Below, in pieces: positions 5,501 through 53,631 of a stretch of 64,000 nucleotides of DNA. Positions within the stretch are counted from its first letter, which is position 1. Every line of letters starts with the position of its first letter. Origin of the DNA: Klebsormidium nitens (taxonomy: Eukaryota > Plantae > Klebsormidiophyceae). The notes under the pieces are model-generated. The model was not told the origin of the DNA and made no database searches. It saw nothing but the letters and a program-made list of their open reading frames with translations. The stretch is from positions 248,001 to 312,000 of the forward strand of contig DF236955.1 of assembly GCA_000708835.1 (NCBI GenBank). Reading direction: 5' to 3'. Both the position numbers and the translations under genes were made by a program.

Positions 5501-6649
5501 CCGGCCCGGGGCAGCCGCTCGTGAGTCCAACATGAAGAAATCCCGAGTCAAGCAAAATTCGAATTGAACCACCAAAATTGGCGCCAAATTTCACAGTTTA
5601 GCGAATCGGTGCTGGCCACGTACCAAGTCAACTACACTGTTGACCGTCGATCACAATATTGTAGTCACTGGCTGCGATTATACCAATGCTATAGTGCTTG
5701 TTAAATAGAAGCCGTGACATCCGGATTTCTTGATCGGACGGTCGGCCTTGAGAACACTGACCTTCAGCACCTGCGTTCCAATGATATCCCTTCACTTTTT
5801 TTTTGTAGCTCGGTTTTTTTATTTTGTAAAAAACGAGCTCTCGCTTTTACCCGGGTAGTTTGGTTTTGGGATAAAGTGGCGCTCCAGACTGGGTCACTCA
5901 GTTAAGCCGATTTTATCCATCGAACGGTGCTTCTGGCGGAACTACGATCTGAAATCAGTCGACTTGGCTTTTCGACGGGTTTTGGAGTTCGATGCTTCAA
6001 AAATCTTTTTTGTTGGTGAACCTTTTTGGAACGTGACCGCCATACGTACGATAAAACCCTGCGATCATGCCCGCGTGCTAGCGCCCGCAGGGGACCGTCA
6101 CCCGGCCGCGTGCTTTGCATCTTCCTAGTATGAAAAGGTAGCCGTCCGATGGTATTGTGCCAATCGGTTGGATTACATATTCGCACGCGTGAAATTGGGC
6201 GTGGCTGCCTGCTTATGTCAGCACCGGGCAAAACTCTGTCGACTTGAGTACTCTAGAAGGTGGACCCGGTAGCAGGATTTATAGGACCTACGACGACGGT
6301 TGCTCTGTAAGCTATACTCACTACTAGTGGTCAGCTCCTTATGTCTACAGTACCGGTCAGTGGTCTTCGATAACTTAGATAAGACGGGTGCCCGGTAGAT
6401 TCTCATACGCTGGATAACCGGCCGGTCGTAAATCGGAGCAAACGGCAGCCGTCCGATTGTATTTTCCCACGCGTTTGAGACGCTTCGATTGAGTAATCTA
6501 ATACTTGCAATAATTTATTTATCAAATTTTGCGTCAATACGCTCAAAAATGGAAATCCCCCCCAAAAGAAAGAGCGTCAATAGGCGAAAACCGAGCATTC
6601 ACACCGCACAGCGGTTTAGCATTTTTTTTTTTTTTTGTACACACATATT

Positions 6650-7010
6650 CGAGCGCTATATCCTTTTACTCTTTCCGATGTCGAAACTAGGATACACCAT
6701 ACACATCATGTGGGCCTGAAATTCTCAGAAAAGGCCTTCCTGTACCTAGTCCTACCGTATGGTCTGAGCCCGGCTCTTAGCCAAGCCTCCAACATGGCAG
6801 GCCTTCATTTGTTGCCATGATATATACCTTTTTCCTCTAGGCAGGTCGCATTGCTGACGGCCACATGAGTATGCGATGGTTTCCTGTCAGTGTTACAGAT
6901 CTGTTTGTGTGGGACTGCAATGAGATCCTGACTTGGTGGACAAGTGGCTCTACGCAACCTTTCATGAGACGTAAGAAGTTTGGCCTGGTTGCAAACGAAT
7001 ACCATATTGG
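6650..7010 (+). mobile_element. Possible highly degenerate DIRS/Ty3-type reverse transcriptase remnant
   Basis: Across frames: FTLSDV / KLGY / HHVGL ... FLYLVLPYGLSPA ... KFGLVANE, resembling DLKSGYHHV...VLPFGLSTAP...GLVVN.EKS. No intact YxDD, frameshifts are present and spacing is imperfect. Confidence 0.3.
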
Positions 7011-44100: not shown

Positions 44101-47038
44101 TCCTCTCCTTCGTTACGTCAGACTCTCTGCATGTTTAAGTCACGCTGTTACGTTTCTTCACTTCATGGGCAGAACGCTCTTTATAGCTCAAAAGGTCAGC
44201 GTCACCGCGTCAGATGCACCCATCGAGCCGCTCTTGATTGCTGAATGATCTTCGCACCAGTTCTAAGCACCCTCACGTGAAAAAACAAAAACGTAAACTG
44301 CAATCAAACGCACCTCCCGTGATCTCATCTCCTTCATCTGAGTGGGGCCCTCAGGCTTTCGAACCGCTCACCTGTCCCTAATCTTCTCCAGTTCCCTTGG
44401 ATCATTGACCAGCACCTGTATTCCCATCTGCATCTTGGTCTTCTGGAGGTTGAAGTCTAGGCATGCAATCTTGGCCGGTGACACGCTCTTGACCATCCCC
44501 TGGGCTGCACGTGTCGTGTTGATTGCGTAACCCTTCAGCAGCTGGCTCTCCTTGGCGCTCTTCCCGTGTGCCTTCAGAATATTGATGGACTGCAGGACGG
44601 TGTTAGAGCGATCCATGTTCAGCCCAGAGTCCTTGTGAAAGGAGACGTAAGCATGATTTACCAAAGTCGGATAGATTTGAGCAGCCGGCAACTCGAAACC
44701 AGCGCTGCATTTGTCCATAAAAGAGGAGAAGGATGATGTAGCTAGGTCAGGTATCTCAGGAAAACTGGAAGCATCTACAGTGCGGGCAAGATTTTCCGAA
44801 TTTCACCAAAATACGTATTACTTGGAGTCCTGACCACCAGTCTCACTGACCTTGATTGGGTAGCGCACATCTCCTCTATCGTTTGTTGACTTGATGGATT
44901 GCACGGCATCCACCGCCTGCAATGCAATCACGAGGCTCAGTCCGGTTGCTACGAAAGCTTTTGGTGCACAGAAGGACCTAAAACAAGACCAATGGTCCCA
45001 AGCGCAGTCCATGAACAAGTATCAGGCACCTTAGTGCACTGGCCGATTGTACCGTTTTCCTTTGTGGTCGGTGACTTACTATCTTGGCAAAGTAGTCGCT
45101 CTCAGTTCCAATGATCTTAGAGGACATGCTGGTCTTTGCGGCATTAAGGAGCGTCTCCTTGGGCAGTTTGTCAACCTGCAAAGAAATGTTCTTCAGTCAA
45201 GTTGGGCACATGTGAGGTTGCGAGGTTTCAGATCAAGAAAAACATGACTGCATAGGAGGGGACGATGCGTAACCTGGTGATATGATGCTGGAGTCGAGCA
45301 ACAAGCACCAAAATGCATGAAAATGGGCAAAAAGACCTCCCCTTCACCTTTATGGCCAGCTTCTCATCTACATACTTCACGGCTTCCCGCATAGCAAGCT
45401 GCAAAAAGAGAAAGACAGACACATGTGAGCATTGTGATTCGAAACTTGGATGTCTGTCCCCTGTACCAAGATTGGAAGGTCTAGATTGCTTCATAGCAAG
45501 TACATCTAGATTCTGTATACTGTACGCTTTTCATCAACGTCCATTGCAAAATTGCACCTATTCATCTTCAATTGGCAAGTTGCCGACTCTCAAAGTAGCA
45601 GAGCCGTTGACATCAAGTTTTCAAAAGCGACATCAACTCAGAGTGTTAGTGTTAGGAGTATTGGCTCATTTAACTTACACCATTTTTGGCACTACAGTAA
45701 TCTGAACTTACCCTGTAGCCACTGATGATGGATGTTGGATGTATCTTGTTGCGAACCAGGTCGTTGGCCCTCTGCAGGAATTGCACATAGTCCATCAGAA
45801 CACGAACACATACCCCCGTACTGAATCCTGCCTCCGTCATCAATCGCCACACCACAAGGTCCAACCTTCACAAGTTTTTCACCAACGCTGGAGCAGCGAC
45901 ATCTTGAAAAGCCTGGCGCTACCACCAACACCGGAGCCACAAACTTTTATGAGCCCTGGCGCTGCCACTAGAACACACTCACCTTCAACAGCTCCGCTGC
46001 CACAATGACCACGGAGGTGGTGCCATCGCCCACTTCCCTGTCTTGGAGCTCCGCCAGCTCAACAAGAACCTGTACTTTGATAACCCAGACTCAGAACGCC
46101 CTTCTAATTCAGAAACTTGCCGGAACCTGACGACTTGATGGCCGGACTTCTGATCTTACAATGATGCCACCACCCTCGACAAGGCTTAGAAAGTGGTCGG
46201 ATGCAAGTGATGGTTGATCTGCAGTCGGTTGTGCATCAGATAGTTTTTTATGCTGGACCTCTCGTTCATTGAAGCCCTGGCAGCTTACCTTGGCGGCTGG
46301 ATGTTCCACTTCGAGCATCTTCAGAATTGTGGCACCGTCGTTTGTGATAGTGACATCACCGATGTCATCCACCAGCATCTGTGGAGGCACCGCTGACCTC
46401 AATCAATCACCTTAGAAGCAAGGCTTGGGTATCAAGTCCAATTTGCAATCAATTAAGTATCAATTTGGTATTCTACCACCACTTAATGGAGATAAACCAA
46501 ATACTCTTGACTTCTAGACCATCAACAAGGTAAGATCGAAACCAGGTGTCTGCTACCACTGAAAGTACGAGTGTATGACTTTGTTGCAGAGTGCACCAAT
46601 CAAACACCAGAAAAAGGACGGATTCTCTTGCACTAAGGTGCCAGTAATACTCACCTTGTCCAGGCCCACAGGACCCAAGGAGCTCTTCACTACGTTGGAG
46701 ATCGCTTGGACGGCAGTGGCTGCAGGATCAAATATTGTGTGTCAAACTGTGGCTTTGTTTGACAGCAGGTTGCACCAGTGACCAATTTTTTTTTGTGGAG
46801 TTCGTTCGAAGGTGTCAAATAAGTGTTGCGTGTTCTTAAGGAGACTTGTCATGATGGAAGTTCGATTAATCAAACAGCCTGCAGCAAGAATTCACCCAGT
46901 TCCGCGATGCCAGCAACGCTCCACGACGCAGTGCACACGCCTGTTAAAACAGTTGTACAAGCAAAGGCTGCCCTTACCGTTCTGTGTTCTGACATCTTGC
47001 CCGGATTGACGATCGCCAGAGATTTCCAGTCCTTCCAT
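41180..47038 (-). CDS. CCT1: T-complex protein 1 subunit alpha (CCT1), multi-exon
   Basis: Starts [20 protein letters not shown] at 47038. Exons encode [66 protein letters not shown] and VAGGGAVE; last exon [18 protein letters not shown]...GH* ends at 41180. Confidence 0.98.
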
Positions 47039-48002
47039 CCTAGCCTGCTTGGTGAAAACCACAGGATTGAGAAGACACTCGCGCAGCTACTAGCTGCGAT
47101 TGGAAGCTCTCTCGTCAATGCGCCGTTCACAAACGTCCCTGAGGCTGCATTCTTCAAGTTCTGTTCTGCCCACTTCTTTTCTGAACAGCTTTCAAATTCT
47201 GGAGTGCAGCTGCCGGGTGAATGCAGGTCTGTCCAAACTAGCAAAATGCTCCAAATCGCGAGGCGAAGGCAAAACCGCGTGTTTTTGGACAACGTCGAAG
47301 AGCTCCGCTTGTTTACAATCGACTAGCTGCTTGGTTGATATGCCCAGAAGATGGTGAGCCTAGCCGGTTTTCTTGACCACCGGGGGCGGTGGGGTGGGGG
47401 CTTACTGCTACCATTAGTTAAATAAGGACTGCCGGCCAAATCTCTTCACCCGCATCAAGAGCACCTGGTATTGAAGGAAGCACCGGGGGGTGTGGCTGCC
47501 ACAACTGCTTCCTGACTTCGAAACCTTCTGAGGCCTTGTAAATTCTCGCGAGCTTAATTGCAAGCACAGAATGCTTATATATTTTAAAAGGGATTTTAGG
47601 GTTTGCTGTGCTTGCGCAGCGCCGCACTGCCAACTGGTCTCTGCACTGGCAGGGATTTGGGGCGGCGCGGCGGCATGGGTGCATTGGGCATTGGGGGCTT
47701 GCTGGAGATATTTCTATCCAACCAAGTTTGAAATGTTGTCTGGACCACGGACAGTGGCTTCTCAGATTGGAGAATCGCGGCCATCCACCGCATGGCTCAA
47801 CCAACTTATTGACAAAAGAGGGCGCTGCAGTCTCCACCTGCTGCAATGCAGTGGTCGTCTGACGAATACATCCAGCTTTCCTGTGCATAAGCCTGCTTTG
47901 GAGCTGGTGGCAGCTACGCAGCTTTCATGACACTTGGAAGCACTTGCAGAGGCTCTCATCGCCTGCTGCACCATTAGAGAGCAGTATCAAACGACATCTG
48001 CA

Positions 48003-50104
48003 ATGAACAGTGACACAGATCGTTTGTGGTCTTGGGAGGAAGCGCGTGATTCGTGCCTGCAGCGGCTCCAGGAGGCTTGGGGTTATGGCAGCAGGGTCGC
48101 AAAACCCGGGATTCCATATGTGATCCAAGGAGCTGCAGCTGGAATCACCTTTGTGGGGGGGTTAGCTGGTATCCAGGTCAGCAGGGTTCATTTTGCAATG
48201 CCCTATCAGTAATGTAACCGTTGATGATTGACCTGTGCACCGCCAGATTTGATCTCCAAACATTTGTACCTTCGGTATGCTGGAAACTGATCGTATGCAA
48301 TTCTTAAAGAGGGCCATCTGCTTTGTTTGCAGGGGGTTGCATACGCTTGCAGAATTTCGTGCGCATCACCTCACATTGGTCCCTTGTTTGGCATGGTGGG
48401 GGTTGGACTGGCATCAGCAGCTGGCGGACAGGTATGTAAACACTCTGCTTTGCAAAACTTCGAAAGCATGCAGCGCGCAGCTTTTGTTGCAAAGAGTGTT
48501 CGGGATAAGGCTGGTCGCGATGTAGAGCGATCCACACAAGTCTGCTTAAATCCTGATTGTGATTGCAGGTGTCGAAGGCTGTTGGCCGGTGGCAGGCAGG
48601 GCTCGAGCCTTGGCCCCGAGAAGGTCTGGCAGCTATTAGAGGAGAGGAAGTGCTTTTGGATGCTGCGCTCGGCATCCTAGCGTACAAGGTGTGTCGTTTC
48701 CCAAGGACGGAGGAAGGACTCTTTTAGGCAAATGGCTTGTCTCTAAAGATGGAGTCACCGTTGGTTTTGTTTCAGCTTTTCAAGCCTCCACTGAACATTC
48801 TAAATCACCCTCAGGGGCAGAAAGGTTCTGGTTTGAAAATCTGACTTTGGTGCCATGACCTGACCTGGCTAAGTTCCCCTGTCTATCAGGCCCTGGGAGG
48901 CATGTTCAAGAACGTGAATCCAAGCGACCTCCGCTATCCTGGTTCATTTGCAAGAAGTTCAATAGCTGGTGAGTTTCCAGCATGCGCCTCATGCTTTTAC
49001 TCAGAAAGACTCGTAAGAAGTTGAACTTTGATTGTCCTACTTGGTGCTCTTAGTCGAAGCTGAGAGTAACATCTGCGGTGCGACGGCGTTTGTTGCCCAC
49101 TAAAATTCTGGCACAGTGTGCAGCCAACGGTGCCCAGTACAGCACCGTAAAGCAGCGGAAGGACATCGTTAGCCTCTTCCGACGGTATGGGTGCCATCAC
49201 TGTGGCAGGCGCACTGGAGAGTGGTGAGGAACACCAAAAGACCCCTCTCTTTCTCGAAGCCGGTCCCTGGTGTGTCACTCTGACCTCAAGGATGCCAAGC
49301 CTGGACACCATATTCTGGGGCAGAAAAGTAGTCGTCGAAGCAAGGGACAGAAATCTCTGATAATGAAGCGATGGACGGTTGAGTTGATAATATTCACGTG
49401 GACAGTTCCGAAGAGTGCGGCCACTCAGGCCCTCGTAAATCTGACACAAGTACATTCATTTGCAGTATTGGCGACCACATGCCACCAAACAAGTTTGTCT
49501 GGCCCGAAGGTACTCGTTCGAAGGTAGTGACTGCCAGTCAAAATGTTTTCGTGAAAGCGTTGAGACAGGTAACAAGACGAAAAGGTCCAGCCCGCACCAA
49601 CTCGGGGACGTTGAAGGCTGCAGAGCGGGTAGCCCAGCGCCTGTTCCCGCAGTGCACGAAATGTTCGGAGAAGCAGTCAGTCGCCGTCAAGCTCGGGAGG
49701 CAGGTTCTCGTTGTTCACAAGCGACTGGGCCTTCCTGAGGTGAGGGAATTAGCCGCCTTCCAGTCCTTTAGGTCTCGTTTTGCCTTGTTGGGACTGTTGC
49801 AAAATGTCCTTGTTCTTTGATGTTTTGACAGACTGGTCTGCTCCCGAAAGCTGCTTCTTCCCCTTTCGTTCTTGATTGCCATTTTCTCCTACTTTCTGGA
49901 GGCTTGACGAACCAGCCTTTGTCTTGCAGTCGTGCTATTACGCGGGCGTCTTTGCTGGACTTAGACACTATGTCGACCCCACGATCGAAAGACGGAGAGC
50001 TCATAAGACAGACGGACCCACTCGACACCACTAAAGCGGAGAGGATTGTCGGTGTCTGCCTGTCGTTGAGCATTCAAGGATGCCCAAAAAGTTTATTATA
50101 TTGA
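48003..50104 (+). CDS. Uncharacterised membrane-associated protein with an HNH-like (His-Me finger) domain resembling bacterial Rhs toxin C-termini; join(48003..48176,48333..48431,48569..48688,48890..48968,49124..49223,49466..49739, last exon uncertain from ~49832)
   Basis: Six exons join in perfect phase through GT-AG introns to give ...PSDLRYPGSFARSSIAANG...RRYGCHHCGRRTGECIGDHMPPNK...QRLFPQCTKCSEKQS. The N-terminal half has Gly/Ala-rich hydrophobic helices. Start Met and final exon are tentative. Confidence 0.8.
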
Positions 50105-51615
50105 AATGCTACACTACTGTAGCTTGCTGCGATTGAGCAAATTTTGCCATACGCTTGCTAAGACCATTGCGGACACATGCATCAGCTGCCAATCTAGCTC
50201 AAAGGCGTCTATGAGCAAATCTGACAATATGGAGACATGCTAGTGCAAGTCAGAGGCAATTTGTTGTCGAGGTGCACGGGCTGATTGCGCGCGCCCAAAT
50301 TAAGACTGTAACCATGCAGAATCGATTCATGAGCTCTTAATTTACAAGGAGATAGCACTCAAAAGTGGACATGCCCACGAATGACTCTCAGCCAGGCGCC
50401 AAGCATTATGTGAGTAAATAGCATATCGTGTGCTACTAGGCTGCACCGCAACATCCGTATCACGGCAGCAAGCTGGAGCCTCCACTTTCTTCTGCACTAG
50501 GTCGGATGCTCAGAATCTTAAGCCGCAGCCGCAACGTACATGCTACAGAGTGACGATCGATAGCTCCGTCGAGTTTTGTCGCATATGTAGCTGATTGCCC
50601 GTGTCCTTGCACATGCTATCCTATGTGCATGCCTGGCCAAAACGCCTTGCACATGCACTTCCGACTTTGCTCCGCATGCGAAACAGGCCCTGATGATCGG
50701 CATCTAGGATAAGTTTCCAAATCATTCAGATAATCCTGATCTGCAAAGAGCCTTTCTTCAATCGATCTGCACTTTTATAACGTACTTCAAAGTCCTGTGT
50801 GTTGAGGATAGTCTGTTCTCGATACCATCGAAGAAAGATAGTCAAGTGTGTGAACGTACATCCATGGTTGAATTACCAGTTCAGACTTCAAAACGTGCTG
50901 AATCTCAGCCAATCAGCTCCGAGTCACATATGATGTTGTCCAGTATTCAAGCAATGCCAAGTAGCAAACAAGTACAGAGATCACGCGAGTTTTGCATGCT
51001 TGCGACCTCAATATCACACTACTTGACGTCTTTCACACAAAATAATCGCTCATTCGACCCAGCACAGTGAAGTCCTCGATCGCGAAACAACTATTAGGCC
51101 CCAGTACTCGTGCTCCCCGTACAAATCTTGGCCGACGTTGGCGGAGATTTGAGGCTATGGTCTTGGCATGGTTACGAGATCCTCATTTGTCAAGGACCCA
51201 ATCAGCGCAAGGAGAACGTGACAGCTGGCGGCCATCTATCGAGGCGCGTGCCTTCGTTTTAACGGCTATACCCTATTCAAAACCTCCGACTGACTCTGCT
51301 GGCTGACATCAGGGCAGATTCCTAGGATCTTGGACCAGCCGAGTGTGACCCAGAGGCAGCAGACACAGAAGTCTGAAGATATTTAGTGAGGAACCATTGG
51401 TGCGAAATTGTAGTTTGGCATTCTGCGAAATGATTCTGAAGAAGCTCGTGAGGCTTGAGCGAGTCTTGGGCAGCCAGTGTTTGTAGCGCACTGAAGAGCA
51501 CAGAGACGCAACGGCTGTATGCCTCTGGCCTCAGCCTCAACACTGTCCTTAGGGCGAGGCGGTGTCGAAGGGACTTGCAGAAGACGAAGCTCAGTCATGA
51601 TGTGCCAGTGCACAT

Positions 51616-53631
51616 GTGATGGAAGATCCGCTGACTGCCAGCAACGACCACGATGCCAGTGAGCGCAGCCTTGATGCGGACGAGAACTCGCTGGTTTTTG
51701 AAAGCCTTGATGACAGAGGACATCAAGGAGAAGATGGCTTCCTGGCTTGGGATGAAGCCTTGGATGAAGACCAGGAGAACATCCCCGTGTTCTACGATCC
51801 TGGAGCGCCTGCAGAATCAAGCACAACCTTGATTACGTCAATCCGCAGCCCTTTTACGGAACAGCACAAGCAAGCTTGCCTTCCTGCCAGATTGCATTCT
51901 CACCAGGCGAGAAGCCCTATGGCACCAGCAAGAGAGCACATGGTGCCTTCGGACACAAGTGCCAATCTGCAAGCAAAGTTCAAGAAGTTCTTAGTACCGG
52001 ACCAGGAAGAGCCTCTGCCACGAGTTCCTACTCCGGAGGCAGACGTGGGGGAGTTGGGCATGTTCAGAGGCATACAACAATTTGAAGCGCTAGAACAACT
52101 TGCTGAAAAGCTGCGCACATCCACTATCACATGCAGGCGTTGGTGTGAGAAAGAGGCTTCCAGCGTCATCTCTGATGTGTGCTGCCTGCTTGAAGATAGG
52201 ATCGCAAAAGTTGCTGGAGAAACAAGTCGAGTCGATGGCGGCGAAAAATCTGCATCTTGCAACTTTTGTTCTCCTCCAAAGAGTCTGTTTCAAGAGGATT
52301 GTCTTAGACAGTCCCTTGTTCACCTGCTCGACCAAGCTCTCGAAGCAGACTCAGAAAGAATGAAAAGCTTGGCAGACGCCTCTGAAAAAGAATCTTGGGG
52401 TCTTGAAGATCAAGCGAAGCTTGCTTCAGCGTTGGGAAACTATGTGAGTCGGGGATGCTTTCCGCAGGATCCTGGCACCGAAAAAGGAGAGAGGCAAAAA
52501 CTGAGGGACGATAAGTCACAAGATCATGAAACCTTGAGGCCGCAGCATGCAGGAAAAAACAGTGGAAGCGGACATGGTGCTCAAATTGAGAGGGCCAAGA
52601 GCACTGACGTCATCAGCAGAGCTCCTCCCTCTGTTTGCATGCTTCCAAAGGAGGATGTTGACGACGAGCGTCAAACAGATTCACCAAGAGAACAATCTTC
52701 AAGGTTTGAGCTTGAATGCTCCTCGATCCACAAACCAGAGATCCAGCAAGGCGCTCCGCGACCAACAAGCGAATCGTTGGCCGCCTATCAGGTCGCATTT
52801 TTCAGGGCTAAGGGTGAATATCTGGCCTGGCAGCATATACGGGAGTGGGCGAAGTCCGACGTTGAGCAGATCTGGGCAAGAAAGCAGCTCTTCGAAGCAA
52901 AGGAACGCTTCCACTCCTTGCAGTCTGCGATGCTGAATCTGAGGCTTTCTAGGCAACAGGCAACGGAGCTTGAGTTGTCCCTCTGTCTGCAAATTGGGGT
53001 GAGCAGGAAAAGAACCCTCGAGACTATCCCTCATTTCTCCGGCGATCCTTTGGGTCCACTTCTGCGTGCGCTGGTCCGTCTTCGATGATGTTAACACTTG
53101 AGCATAGATCAAAAGCTGTTGGTTCCTTCCACTTGCGATTCCTTCCGCTCTTTAATCCCCATCTTTTCATAACACCAGGAAGACGCAAAGTTGCGCACGC
53201 TTCACTGGAAACTTTCTATTCAGACTGGTCGCAAAGATACTTCAGGATTTTCTTCATAGAACCACAGTGGTGGCAGCACGTTTAAAGTTTCAAACGATTT
53301 CATTTCGAAGAGGGCAATCGGTCGTCGTCGCAGTTTTCTTGAAACACTCTTTGATCGGTACACGCAGGTAGAAGATGGACTCGTCAGTCTCCGGTCCAGG
53401 AGACAGCGTTTGAGGGAGAGACTAAAGGCGACGCAGCCCATTCTGGAGACCTCGGCAGCGGGAAAGCTCGAAGAACGGGAAAACAACGATCTGCACACCA
53501 ATCAACATGATGTCTCCAGTGGGCAGGACCCGAGTCCTGCATCAGAAGTGCCCGACAATCTTCTCCACGACCTGACCGCTAGAATGGATCATATCTTCTG
53601 TGAAAAGAAGTTGCTGGGAGCAGGCTCATAA
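51616..53631 (+). CDS. Hypothetical protein, acidic N-terminus and C-terminal coiled coil; probably two exons (intron from ~52999 to ~53406)
   Basis: 490-codon ORF with a donor at QIG|gtgagc and an in-phase acceptor gacag|RLRERLK leading to the stop at 53631. No family motif recognised. Confidence 0.6.

Follow-up and report, generated by a model that had tools for sequence, protein, structure and literature searches.

The 64,000-nucleotide (nt) stretch of Klebsormidium nitens DNA considered here (NCBI GenBank assembly GCA_000708835.1, contig DF236955.1, positions 248,001 to 312,000 of the forward strand) is referred to as the window, and positions are counted from its first letter. At 48003-50034 it carries, on the + strand, a real, expressed seven-exon green-algal gene encoding a protein of 316 amino acids (aa), of which residues ~170 to 290 are homologous, as established by profile comparison, to the C-terminal tip of bacterial Rhs/YD polymorphic toxins. 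Phase arithmetic over the read region 47400-50700 joins the exons in frame, with GT..AG at all borders, into a coding sequence of 951 nt (316 codons plus TAA; Table 1). An earlier interpretation made from the letters alone, here called the sequence-only reading, had joined six exons in phase into a protein of ~280 aa or more with an end at 50104. All of the peptides it quoted, its six exons and their borders stand, but it missed the seventh exon at 49930-50034, and its length and end point give way to those given above.

Transcripts, which the sequence-only reading had proposed as a check on its exons, bear out this structure. The evidence comes from four public runs belonging to four studies, whose contigs were placed on 47500-50600; the runs share 54-63% of the words of the stretch, a share expected of spliced transcripts. 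Contig joints, all of them GT..AG, fall at 48176/48333, 48431/48569, 48688/48890, 48968/49124, 49223/49466 and 49739/49930. Because the contigs skip exactly the six modelled introns, the runs hold transcripts and the gene model is confirmed, and the approximate extent of the transcript can be read from the contig starts and ends (Table 1). A minor alternative acceptor at 49117, 7 nt 5' of exon 5, was seen in one run only (depth 3.8 vs 12.2) and would shift the frame. TGTAA is the usual chlorophyte polyadenylation signal. In three runs the transcript contigs end 6-25 nt downstream of the copy listed in Table 1, which fits such a signal.

Comparison with relatives gives the same structure. All seven window exons align collinearly to homologous proteins, and the seven-exon layout, GT-AG introns included, is also that of a diverged metagenomic relative (L001); between it and the window gene, the intron sequences showed no conservation. 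Agreement of this kind goes well beyond chance. Synonymous sites are saturated in this pair, with a synonymous divergence (pS) of 0.67 against a nonsynonymous divergence (pN) of 0.09, and the resulting dN/dS of about 0.06 indicates that the gene is under strong purifying selection. This selection is strongest in exons 4 and 5, where protein identity to L001 is 96-100%.

Table 1. Features of the gene in the Klebsormidium nitens window (positions in the window)
Feature	Positions	Strand	Description
5' untranslated region (UTR)	47615..48002	+	contig starts 47615-47669; five upstream ATGs; upstream open reading frames (uORFs) of 6 to 65 codons
exon 1	48003..48176	+	58 codons; start ATG, acidic N-terminus, onset of first Gly/Ala-rich hydrophobic helix (runs into exon 2)
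exon 2	48333..48431	+	33 codons; best-conserved helix of the N-terminal module, (R)ISCAsP.lGP..GmvGvGlASa.aGQ, glycine-zipper-like
exon 3	48569..48688	+	40 codons; linker, then onset of third helix (LLDAALGILAYK)
exon 4	48890..48968	+	end of third helix; first conserved block of the nuclease domain, PSDL..PG.fArsSIa, equivalent to bacterial PGPxAxESIPA
exon 5	49124..49223	+	helix, then first zinc knuckle GCHHCG
intron 5	49224..49465	+	242 nt; retained in about half of transcripts, all four runs
exon 6	49466..49739	+	beta-1 with predicted catalytic GDHMPPNK; eukaryote-specific helical insert; beta-2, second zinc knuckle and helix (QRLFPQCTKCSEKQ); conserved LVVH
exon 7	49930..50034	+	conserved C-terminal helix (YYAG..aG.RH), basic tail; TAA at 50032-50034
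3' UTR	50035..50400	+	TGTAA at 50307; contig ends 50313-50400

The sequence-only reading had cited a string from the toxin tips of proteobacterial Rhs proteins, and this motif is real, occurring in Rhs/YD toxins of Ideonella, Sphingomonas and Casimicrobiaceae and in about 29 further clusters. A scan of prokaryotes, covering one genome per species and using the two most conserved peptide patterns of the family, returned five loci, from Ideonella, Hydrocarboniphaga, Sphingomonas, Allosphingosinicella and a Casimicrobiaceae metagenome-assembled genome. In every locus the pattern match forms the last ~95 residues of a long open reading frame (ORF), of 1601 aa in locus L002 and 861 aa in L004; in L006 the tip ends an ORF that reaches the end of the fetched locus (2052 aa there), and the database protein P0067 is 2634 aa long. 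Pfam recognizes RHS-repeat, YD-shell, SpvB, TcdB and FG-GAP modules on the proteins that carry the tip, and the next ORF downstream in L002, L003 and L006 encodes the neutralizing immunity protein Imm21 (PF15589, E 1e-19 to 1e-20). In the Sphingomonas locus, L004, the tip is followed at 6294-6698 by a 134-aa ORF that differs from Imm21, matches no Pfam family and may be an alternative immunity protein for this tip. The bacterial consensus reads PGPxAxESIPA...GCHTCG...GDHQxPxK...PQR[YF]YPQCxxCSNxQGG. A region-restricted search placed the tip on 29 further clusters of long Rhs/YD proteins, including a HINT-bearing actinobacterial one, and tblastn located it on Burkholderia, Priestia, Bacillus, Streptomyces and Shinella plasmids; tblastn against phage records gave no match and thus missed the published phage members.

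Homology between the algal domain and these tips is established by three comparisons. Aligned by hhalign, the algal domain alignment A3 and the bacterial tip alignment A4 match over 97 columns with a probability of 99.6% (E 6e-24). A hidden Markov model (HMM) built from bacteria only and run against 1,648 six-frame pieces of the window ranks exon 6 first (E 6e-6) and exon 5 second (E 6e-4), in collinear order, and a combined algal and bacterial HMM from which the window was left out gives 1e-15 for the exon 6 piece and 5e-9 for the exon 5 piece. Across the alignment of 44 algal and bacterial sequences, the invariant columns are C, C, D, H, P, C, C and Q, and the window domain keeps every one of these residues in its motifs GCHHCG, GDHMPP and PQCTKCSEKQ. 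The putative catalytic His (of DH) and the four Cys are thus present in the window exons, as had been claimed. The earlier remark that no immunity gene is evident nearby also holds, in that the 64-kb window contains no Imm21-like sequence; nor does it contain a second copy of the domain.

The predicted fold agrees with the HNH/EndoVII assignment made by the sequence-only reading. Searches and folds were run with single exons and with database homologues as queries. A domain-only AlphaFold model built from the 44 sequences (predicted local distance difference test score, pLDDT, 87.5) runs from a helix through a CxxC and a first strand, at the end of which lies D-H, to a helical insert and a second strand RFYPQC, after which the alpha helix that bears the invariant Gln opens with another CxxC (strands 55-60, with DH at 58-59, and 96-101; helix 102-114; CxxC at 45-48 and 101-104). 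This predicted arrangement is that of a zinc-stapled beta-beta-alpha-metal finger of the HNH/EndoVII type. When the domain model was compared with 48,161 PDB representatives by the VIA structure search, 59 chains reached Z >= 2, and the top 16 were almost all HNH/EndoVII nucleases (Z 3.1-4.5, 64-73 residues aligned). Among them are the Gme HNH nickase (4h9d; Z 4.5, 73 residues), EcoKMcrA, several Cas9 HNH domains, T4 endonuclease VII, GVE2 HNH, ZRANB3 HNH, IscB, Cap5 and Hpy99I. In an atlas structure search, the clusters of the family itself and an RHS cluster were immediately followed by HNH clusters of the PF01844 type. The gathering thresholds of HNH PF01844 and GH-E PF14410 were not reached, one of 27 tips touching PF01844 at E 0.11, and the link to GH-E is a weak language-model lead only (0.80).

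The gene is not private to one alga, and belongs to a family conserved across eukaryotes. Three exon-sized ORFs of close relatives were the sole matches of a word search with exon 6; an exhaustive HMMER search with the same exon found 18 proteins, and a profile search with their alignment found 25. One product of the HMMER search, P0004, a 4976-aa fibronectin-repeat protein, was rejected as a low-complexity false match. The members are ~290-360 aa long, have no Pfam domain and are called hypothetical wherever the source gives a name. They come from Trebouxiophyceae (Coccomyxa, Trebouxia, Symbiochloris and Chlorella), Sphaeropleales (Monoraphidium and Raphidocelis), the streptophyte alga Spirogloea (three paralogues), a marine picoalga (Tara and MMETSP data) and the alveolate Chromera velia. 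By sequence, then, the ~300-aa architecture is recurrent in chlorophytes, Spirogloea and Chromera. It is probably found in diatoms and cnidarians too, judging from atlas clusters of comparable length that bear the labels Chlorophyta, Bacillariophyta and Cnidaria and were matched by structure search (TM 0.68-0.76) and feature search (0.94-0.96), such matches being leads and not alignments.

Three features set all 18 eukaryotic sequences apart from the bacterial tips, from which they are absent: 30-180 residues are inserted between DHxPP and QRxYPQC, an additional LVxH block is conserved, and this block is followed by a helix YYAG..G.RH. In an unrooted maximum-likelihood tree, eukaryotic and bacterial sequences lie on opposite sides of one long branch (100/99) and Chromera falls outside the green sequences; the bacterial sample of this tree is biased to relatives of one tip. 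One origin of the sampled eukaryotic genes is not rejected by these data. The sequence-only reading had proposed acquisition from bacteria; the family is eukaryote-wide and not a private acquisition of the alga, and the direction of transfer is not given by an unrooted tree.

Much of this distribution had been anticipated. Zhang et al. (2012; PMC3482391, Table 1) define an NGO1392-like clade (Tox-SuFu-Nuc) of the HNH/EndoVII fold with the signature "CxxC, DH, CXXC, Q", and list as its carriers RHS, FilH, TcdB/TcaC, HINT and similar modules, as its immunity partners Imm-SuFu, Imm13, Imm21, Imm33 and Imm38, as its bacterial hosts proteobacteria, actinobacteria and firmicutes, and as its eukaryotic hosts apicomplexans (alveolates), choanoflagellates, metazoa, stramenopiles and Viridiplantae. 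Together with an earlier paper (Zhang, Iyer & Aravind 2011; PMC3113570), it has the clade born in bacterial toxin systems and transferred to eukaryotes, with a possible role there in DNA repair. The family shares the CxxC, DH, CxxC, Q signature with this clade, and its bacterial relatives have the Imm21 partner and the RHS, TcdB/SpvB and HINT carriers in common with it; of the eukaryotes listed, chlorophytes, Spirogloea and Chromera have counterparts found by sequence, whereas those in diatoms and cnidarians are matched only by similarity of predicted structure and of features. Since signature, Imm21 link, carrier modules and eukaryotic spread all fit, we file the window domain in the NGO1392-like clade. 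We therefore regard the gene as an additional member of a computationally described family whose domain clade and eukaryotic spread were predicted in 2011-2012. The sequence-only reading had allowed that the domain might belong to an already characterized eukaryotic family, which is partly the case, the characterization in PMC3113570 and PMC3482391 being computational only. The text read of those papers does not describe the eukaryotic combination of a Gly-rich module, an insert-bearing domain and a C-terminal helix. A full-text literature search for "NGO1392" found no experimental work on the eukaryotic proteins, and Jamet et al. (2015), on gonococcal MafB, mention only the HNH/EndoVII call.

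Other known systems resemble the domain in part. Classical HNH nucleases (PF01844: McrA, Gme HNH 4h9d, phage GVE2 HNH and the HNH domains of Cas9 and IscB) and T4 endonuclease VII, the best structural neighbors of the domain model, have the same layout of CxxC, beta-1 with D-H, P, beta-2 and CxxC at the start of the alpha helix, whereas in the family other residues stand at the Asn position and in place of the last His (QR...CS..Q), eukaryotic members have a long insert between the strands, and the sequence profiles are unconnected. The C-terminal Tox-GHH domain of teneurins, animal proteins descended from YD/Rhs toxins, is likewise an HNH-fold YD/Rhs toxin tip fixed in eukaryotes on a membrane protein; its HNH clade (GHH) is another one, and teneurins keep the whole YD shell, whereas the algal family keeps the tip only, together with a short helical module.

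That module was examined in a model of a full-length homologue, P0011, built from the family alignment (pLDDT 82; predicted TM-score, pTM, 0.77), which places five helices before the domain and two after it. Gly, Ala and Ser abound in the helices, which show GxxxG-like spacing and are only moderately hydrophobic, with Kyte-Doolittle peaks over 15 residues of 1.6 in exons 1 and 2; their insertion into a membrane is plausible. A VIA search with the full-length model was uninformative, being dominated by generic helical and membrane proteins. Many Rhs proteins also have, after the Rhs core and before the tip, a hydrophobic stretch rich in Gly and Ala (L002 5800-6000, L006 5800-5900, P0059, P0060, P0068 and P0080). 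Inheritance of the algal helices from this stretch was considered and rejected, as the bacterial pre-tip region is not conserved and comparison with 29 bacterial proteins gave E values above 0.4, leaving the N-terminal module with no detectable counterpart among them. The bacterial stretch, unconserved and not homologous to the algal helices, is nevertheless a functional parallel and may have to do with membrane passage.

Expression of the gene has two features that could limit its output. The 5' UTR, about 335-390 nt long, contains five upstream ATGs, and an in-frame 65-codon uORF starting at 47733 terminates ahead of the main ATG. Unspliced intron 5 is found in all four runs on a unitig covering 49194-49494, at about the same depth as the spliced joint; by contig depth, which is a rough measure, the retained and spliced forms stand at 50 and 49 in run X1, 28 and 38 in X2, 66 and 48 in X4, and 17 and 13 in X7. 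Among the other introns, intron 3 is about 5% retained and introns 1, 2 and 6 show no retention. In the retained form a stop follows directly after ...GEW, past the first zinc knuckle (CxxC) and before DH. Intron 5 may be a regulated or detained intron, and its retention, as far as these rough depths allow, may be a brake on a hazardous enzyme.

We consider it likely that the gene encodes, taken as a whole, a eukaryotic toxin-tip HNH nuclease that is tethered by helices and possibly gated. The domain would be the eukaryotic branch of the NGO1392-like/Tox-SuFu-Nuc HNH clade and would still act as a divalent-metal-dependent endonuclease of nucleic acids, with DNA as the most likely substrate. 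Its His would serve as general base, Asp and the Gln of the helix would hold the catalytic metal in place of the classical Asn and His, and the four Cys would hold a structural zinc. More tentatively, the five Gly/Ala/Ser-rich N-terminal helices and the C-terminal helix may tether the enzyme to, or embed it in, an internal membrane, where it might act locally and not as a secreted toxin, and one could speculate that its output is held down by the uORFs together with intron 5 retention, which cuts the frame short of the catalytic DH. With a membrane tether, the published role in DNA repair becomes less obvious. A fuller version, in which the eukaryotic branch is a membrane-anchored nuclease of organelles or endomembranes that processes organelle or foreign DNA at the membrane, its dosage gated by the uORFs and a detained intron 5, seems to us distinctly unlikely as a complete account.

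Several observations weigh against this explanation. The RNA label of the four runs is a guess, their contigs themselves being spliced. Each VIA match is weak (Z of 4.5 or less), and for that reason the fold call rests on the agreement among matches. Foldseek found no match in the PDB for the full-length or the domain model; Pfam and NCBIfam gave nothing significant for single window exons, full-length homologues or bacterial tips; and PDB sequence searches, whether started from exon 6 or from the algal or bacterial profile, returned spurious rows only. Membership in the NGO1392-like clade, whose type protein NGO1392 is a MafB of Neisseria gonorrhoeae, is inferred from signature, context and phyletic pattern. 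The last His of classical HNH nucleases is Ser, Cys or Ala in the family, so the chemistry may differ. Kyte-Doolittle peaks over 19 residues reach 1.4-1.8 in the homologues, which is borderline for transmembrane segments, and no signal, transit or targeting peptide was noticed at the acidic N-terminus.

The hydrophobicity values would suit a soluble protein of the same identity, with the Gly/Ala-rich helices bundled on the nuclease and a role in nuclear or organellar DNA repair or recombination. Such a protein would also fit the compactness of the full-length model and the repair proposal in PMC3113570 and PMC3482391. The helices, however, consist of small residues with GxxxG-like spacing and are nearly charge-free over at least 20 residues, and the best structural neighbors of the full-length model are membrane proteins, at weak Z; neither point is decisive, and we regard a soluble repair enzyme as unlikely. 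Replacement of the third classical His by Ser, together with the variable insert of 30-180 aa that splits the eukaryotic beta hairpin, could instead mean that catalysis has been lost and that the domain is a domesticated zinc- or nucleic-acid-binding module. We think this very unlikely, as the bacterial toxin tips lack that His as well and yet must be active, the D, H, Q and four Cys that are invariant in the toxins are invariant in the 18 eukaryotic sequences and the window, and purifying selection is strongest on exons 4-5.

Toxin descent, and expression that seems to be restrained by uORFs and intron retention, would also be expected if the protein were still a weapon, that is, a toxin or defense effector directed against competitors, bacteria or viruses, or used in self-destruction, with an immunity factor encoded elsewhere. 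Yet the gene is single in the window, which holds no Imm21-like sequence, no signal peptide was noticed, divergence is low under selection that is strongly purifying and not diversifying, and the architecture is conserved across distant eukaryotes, all of which makes this highly improbable. A recent, lineage-specific horizontal transfer from a proteobacterium to this alga comes to mind because, among prokaryotes, proteobacterial Rhs tips gave the closest matches found. Its probability is close to negligible in view of the grouping of the eukaryotes on a long, fully supported branch (100/99) apart from all sampled bacterial tips, the insert, LVxH block and C-terminal helix that only eukaryotes share, and six introns whose positions are kept in a relative with saturated synonymous sites. 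We therefore do not consider the soluble repair enzyme, the inactive zinc module, the deployed toxin or the recent transfer to be supported, and return to the helix-tethered toxin-tip nuclease.

The surroundings of the gene include, at 44368-44715 on the - strand, an upstream exon-sized ORF of the TCP-1/cpn60 chaperonin family (E 5e-12), an ordinary eukaryotic neighbor gene, and, just downstream at 51616-53088 on the + strand, an ORF of 490 aa with no Pfam match.

The gene provides a clean, transcript-verified case in which a nuclease of bacterial polymorphic toxins has become fixed in eukaryotes as a conserved gene. With no Pfam or NCBIfam model, no solved structure and no experimental study found, every member of the family is annotated in databases as a "hypothetical protein"; with a profile built, for instance, from alignments A3, A4 and A5, annotators could give the family a name. 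The architecture recorded here runs from a helical, possibly membrane-embedded module through an HNH finger with a eukaryote-specific insert to a C-terminal helix, and in combination with strong purifying selection it offers a concrete protein in which localization, substrate and knock-out can be tested. Retention of intron 5, as judged from contig depths, would be a simple possible means for the cell to restrain a dangerous enzyme. If the account of a membrane-anchored, gated nuclease were true, the family would represent a widely conserved, unrecognized eukaryotic nuclease system descended from a bacterial weapon.

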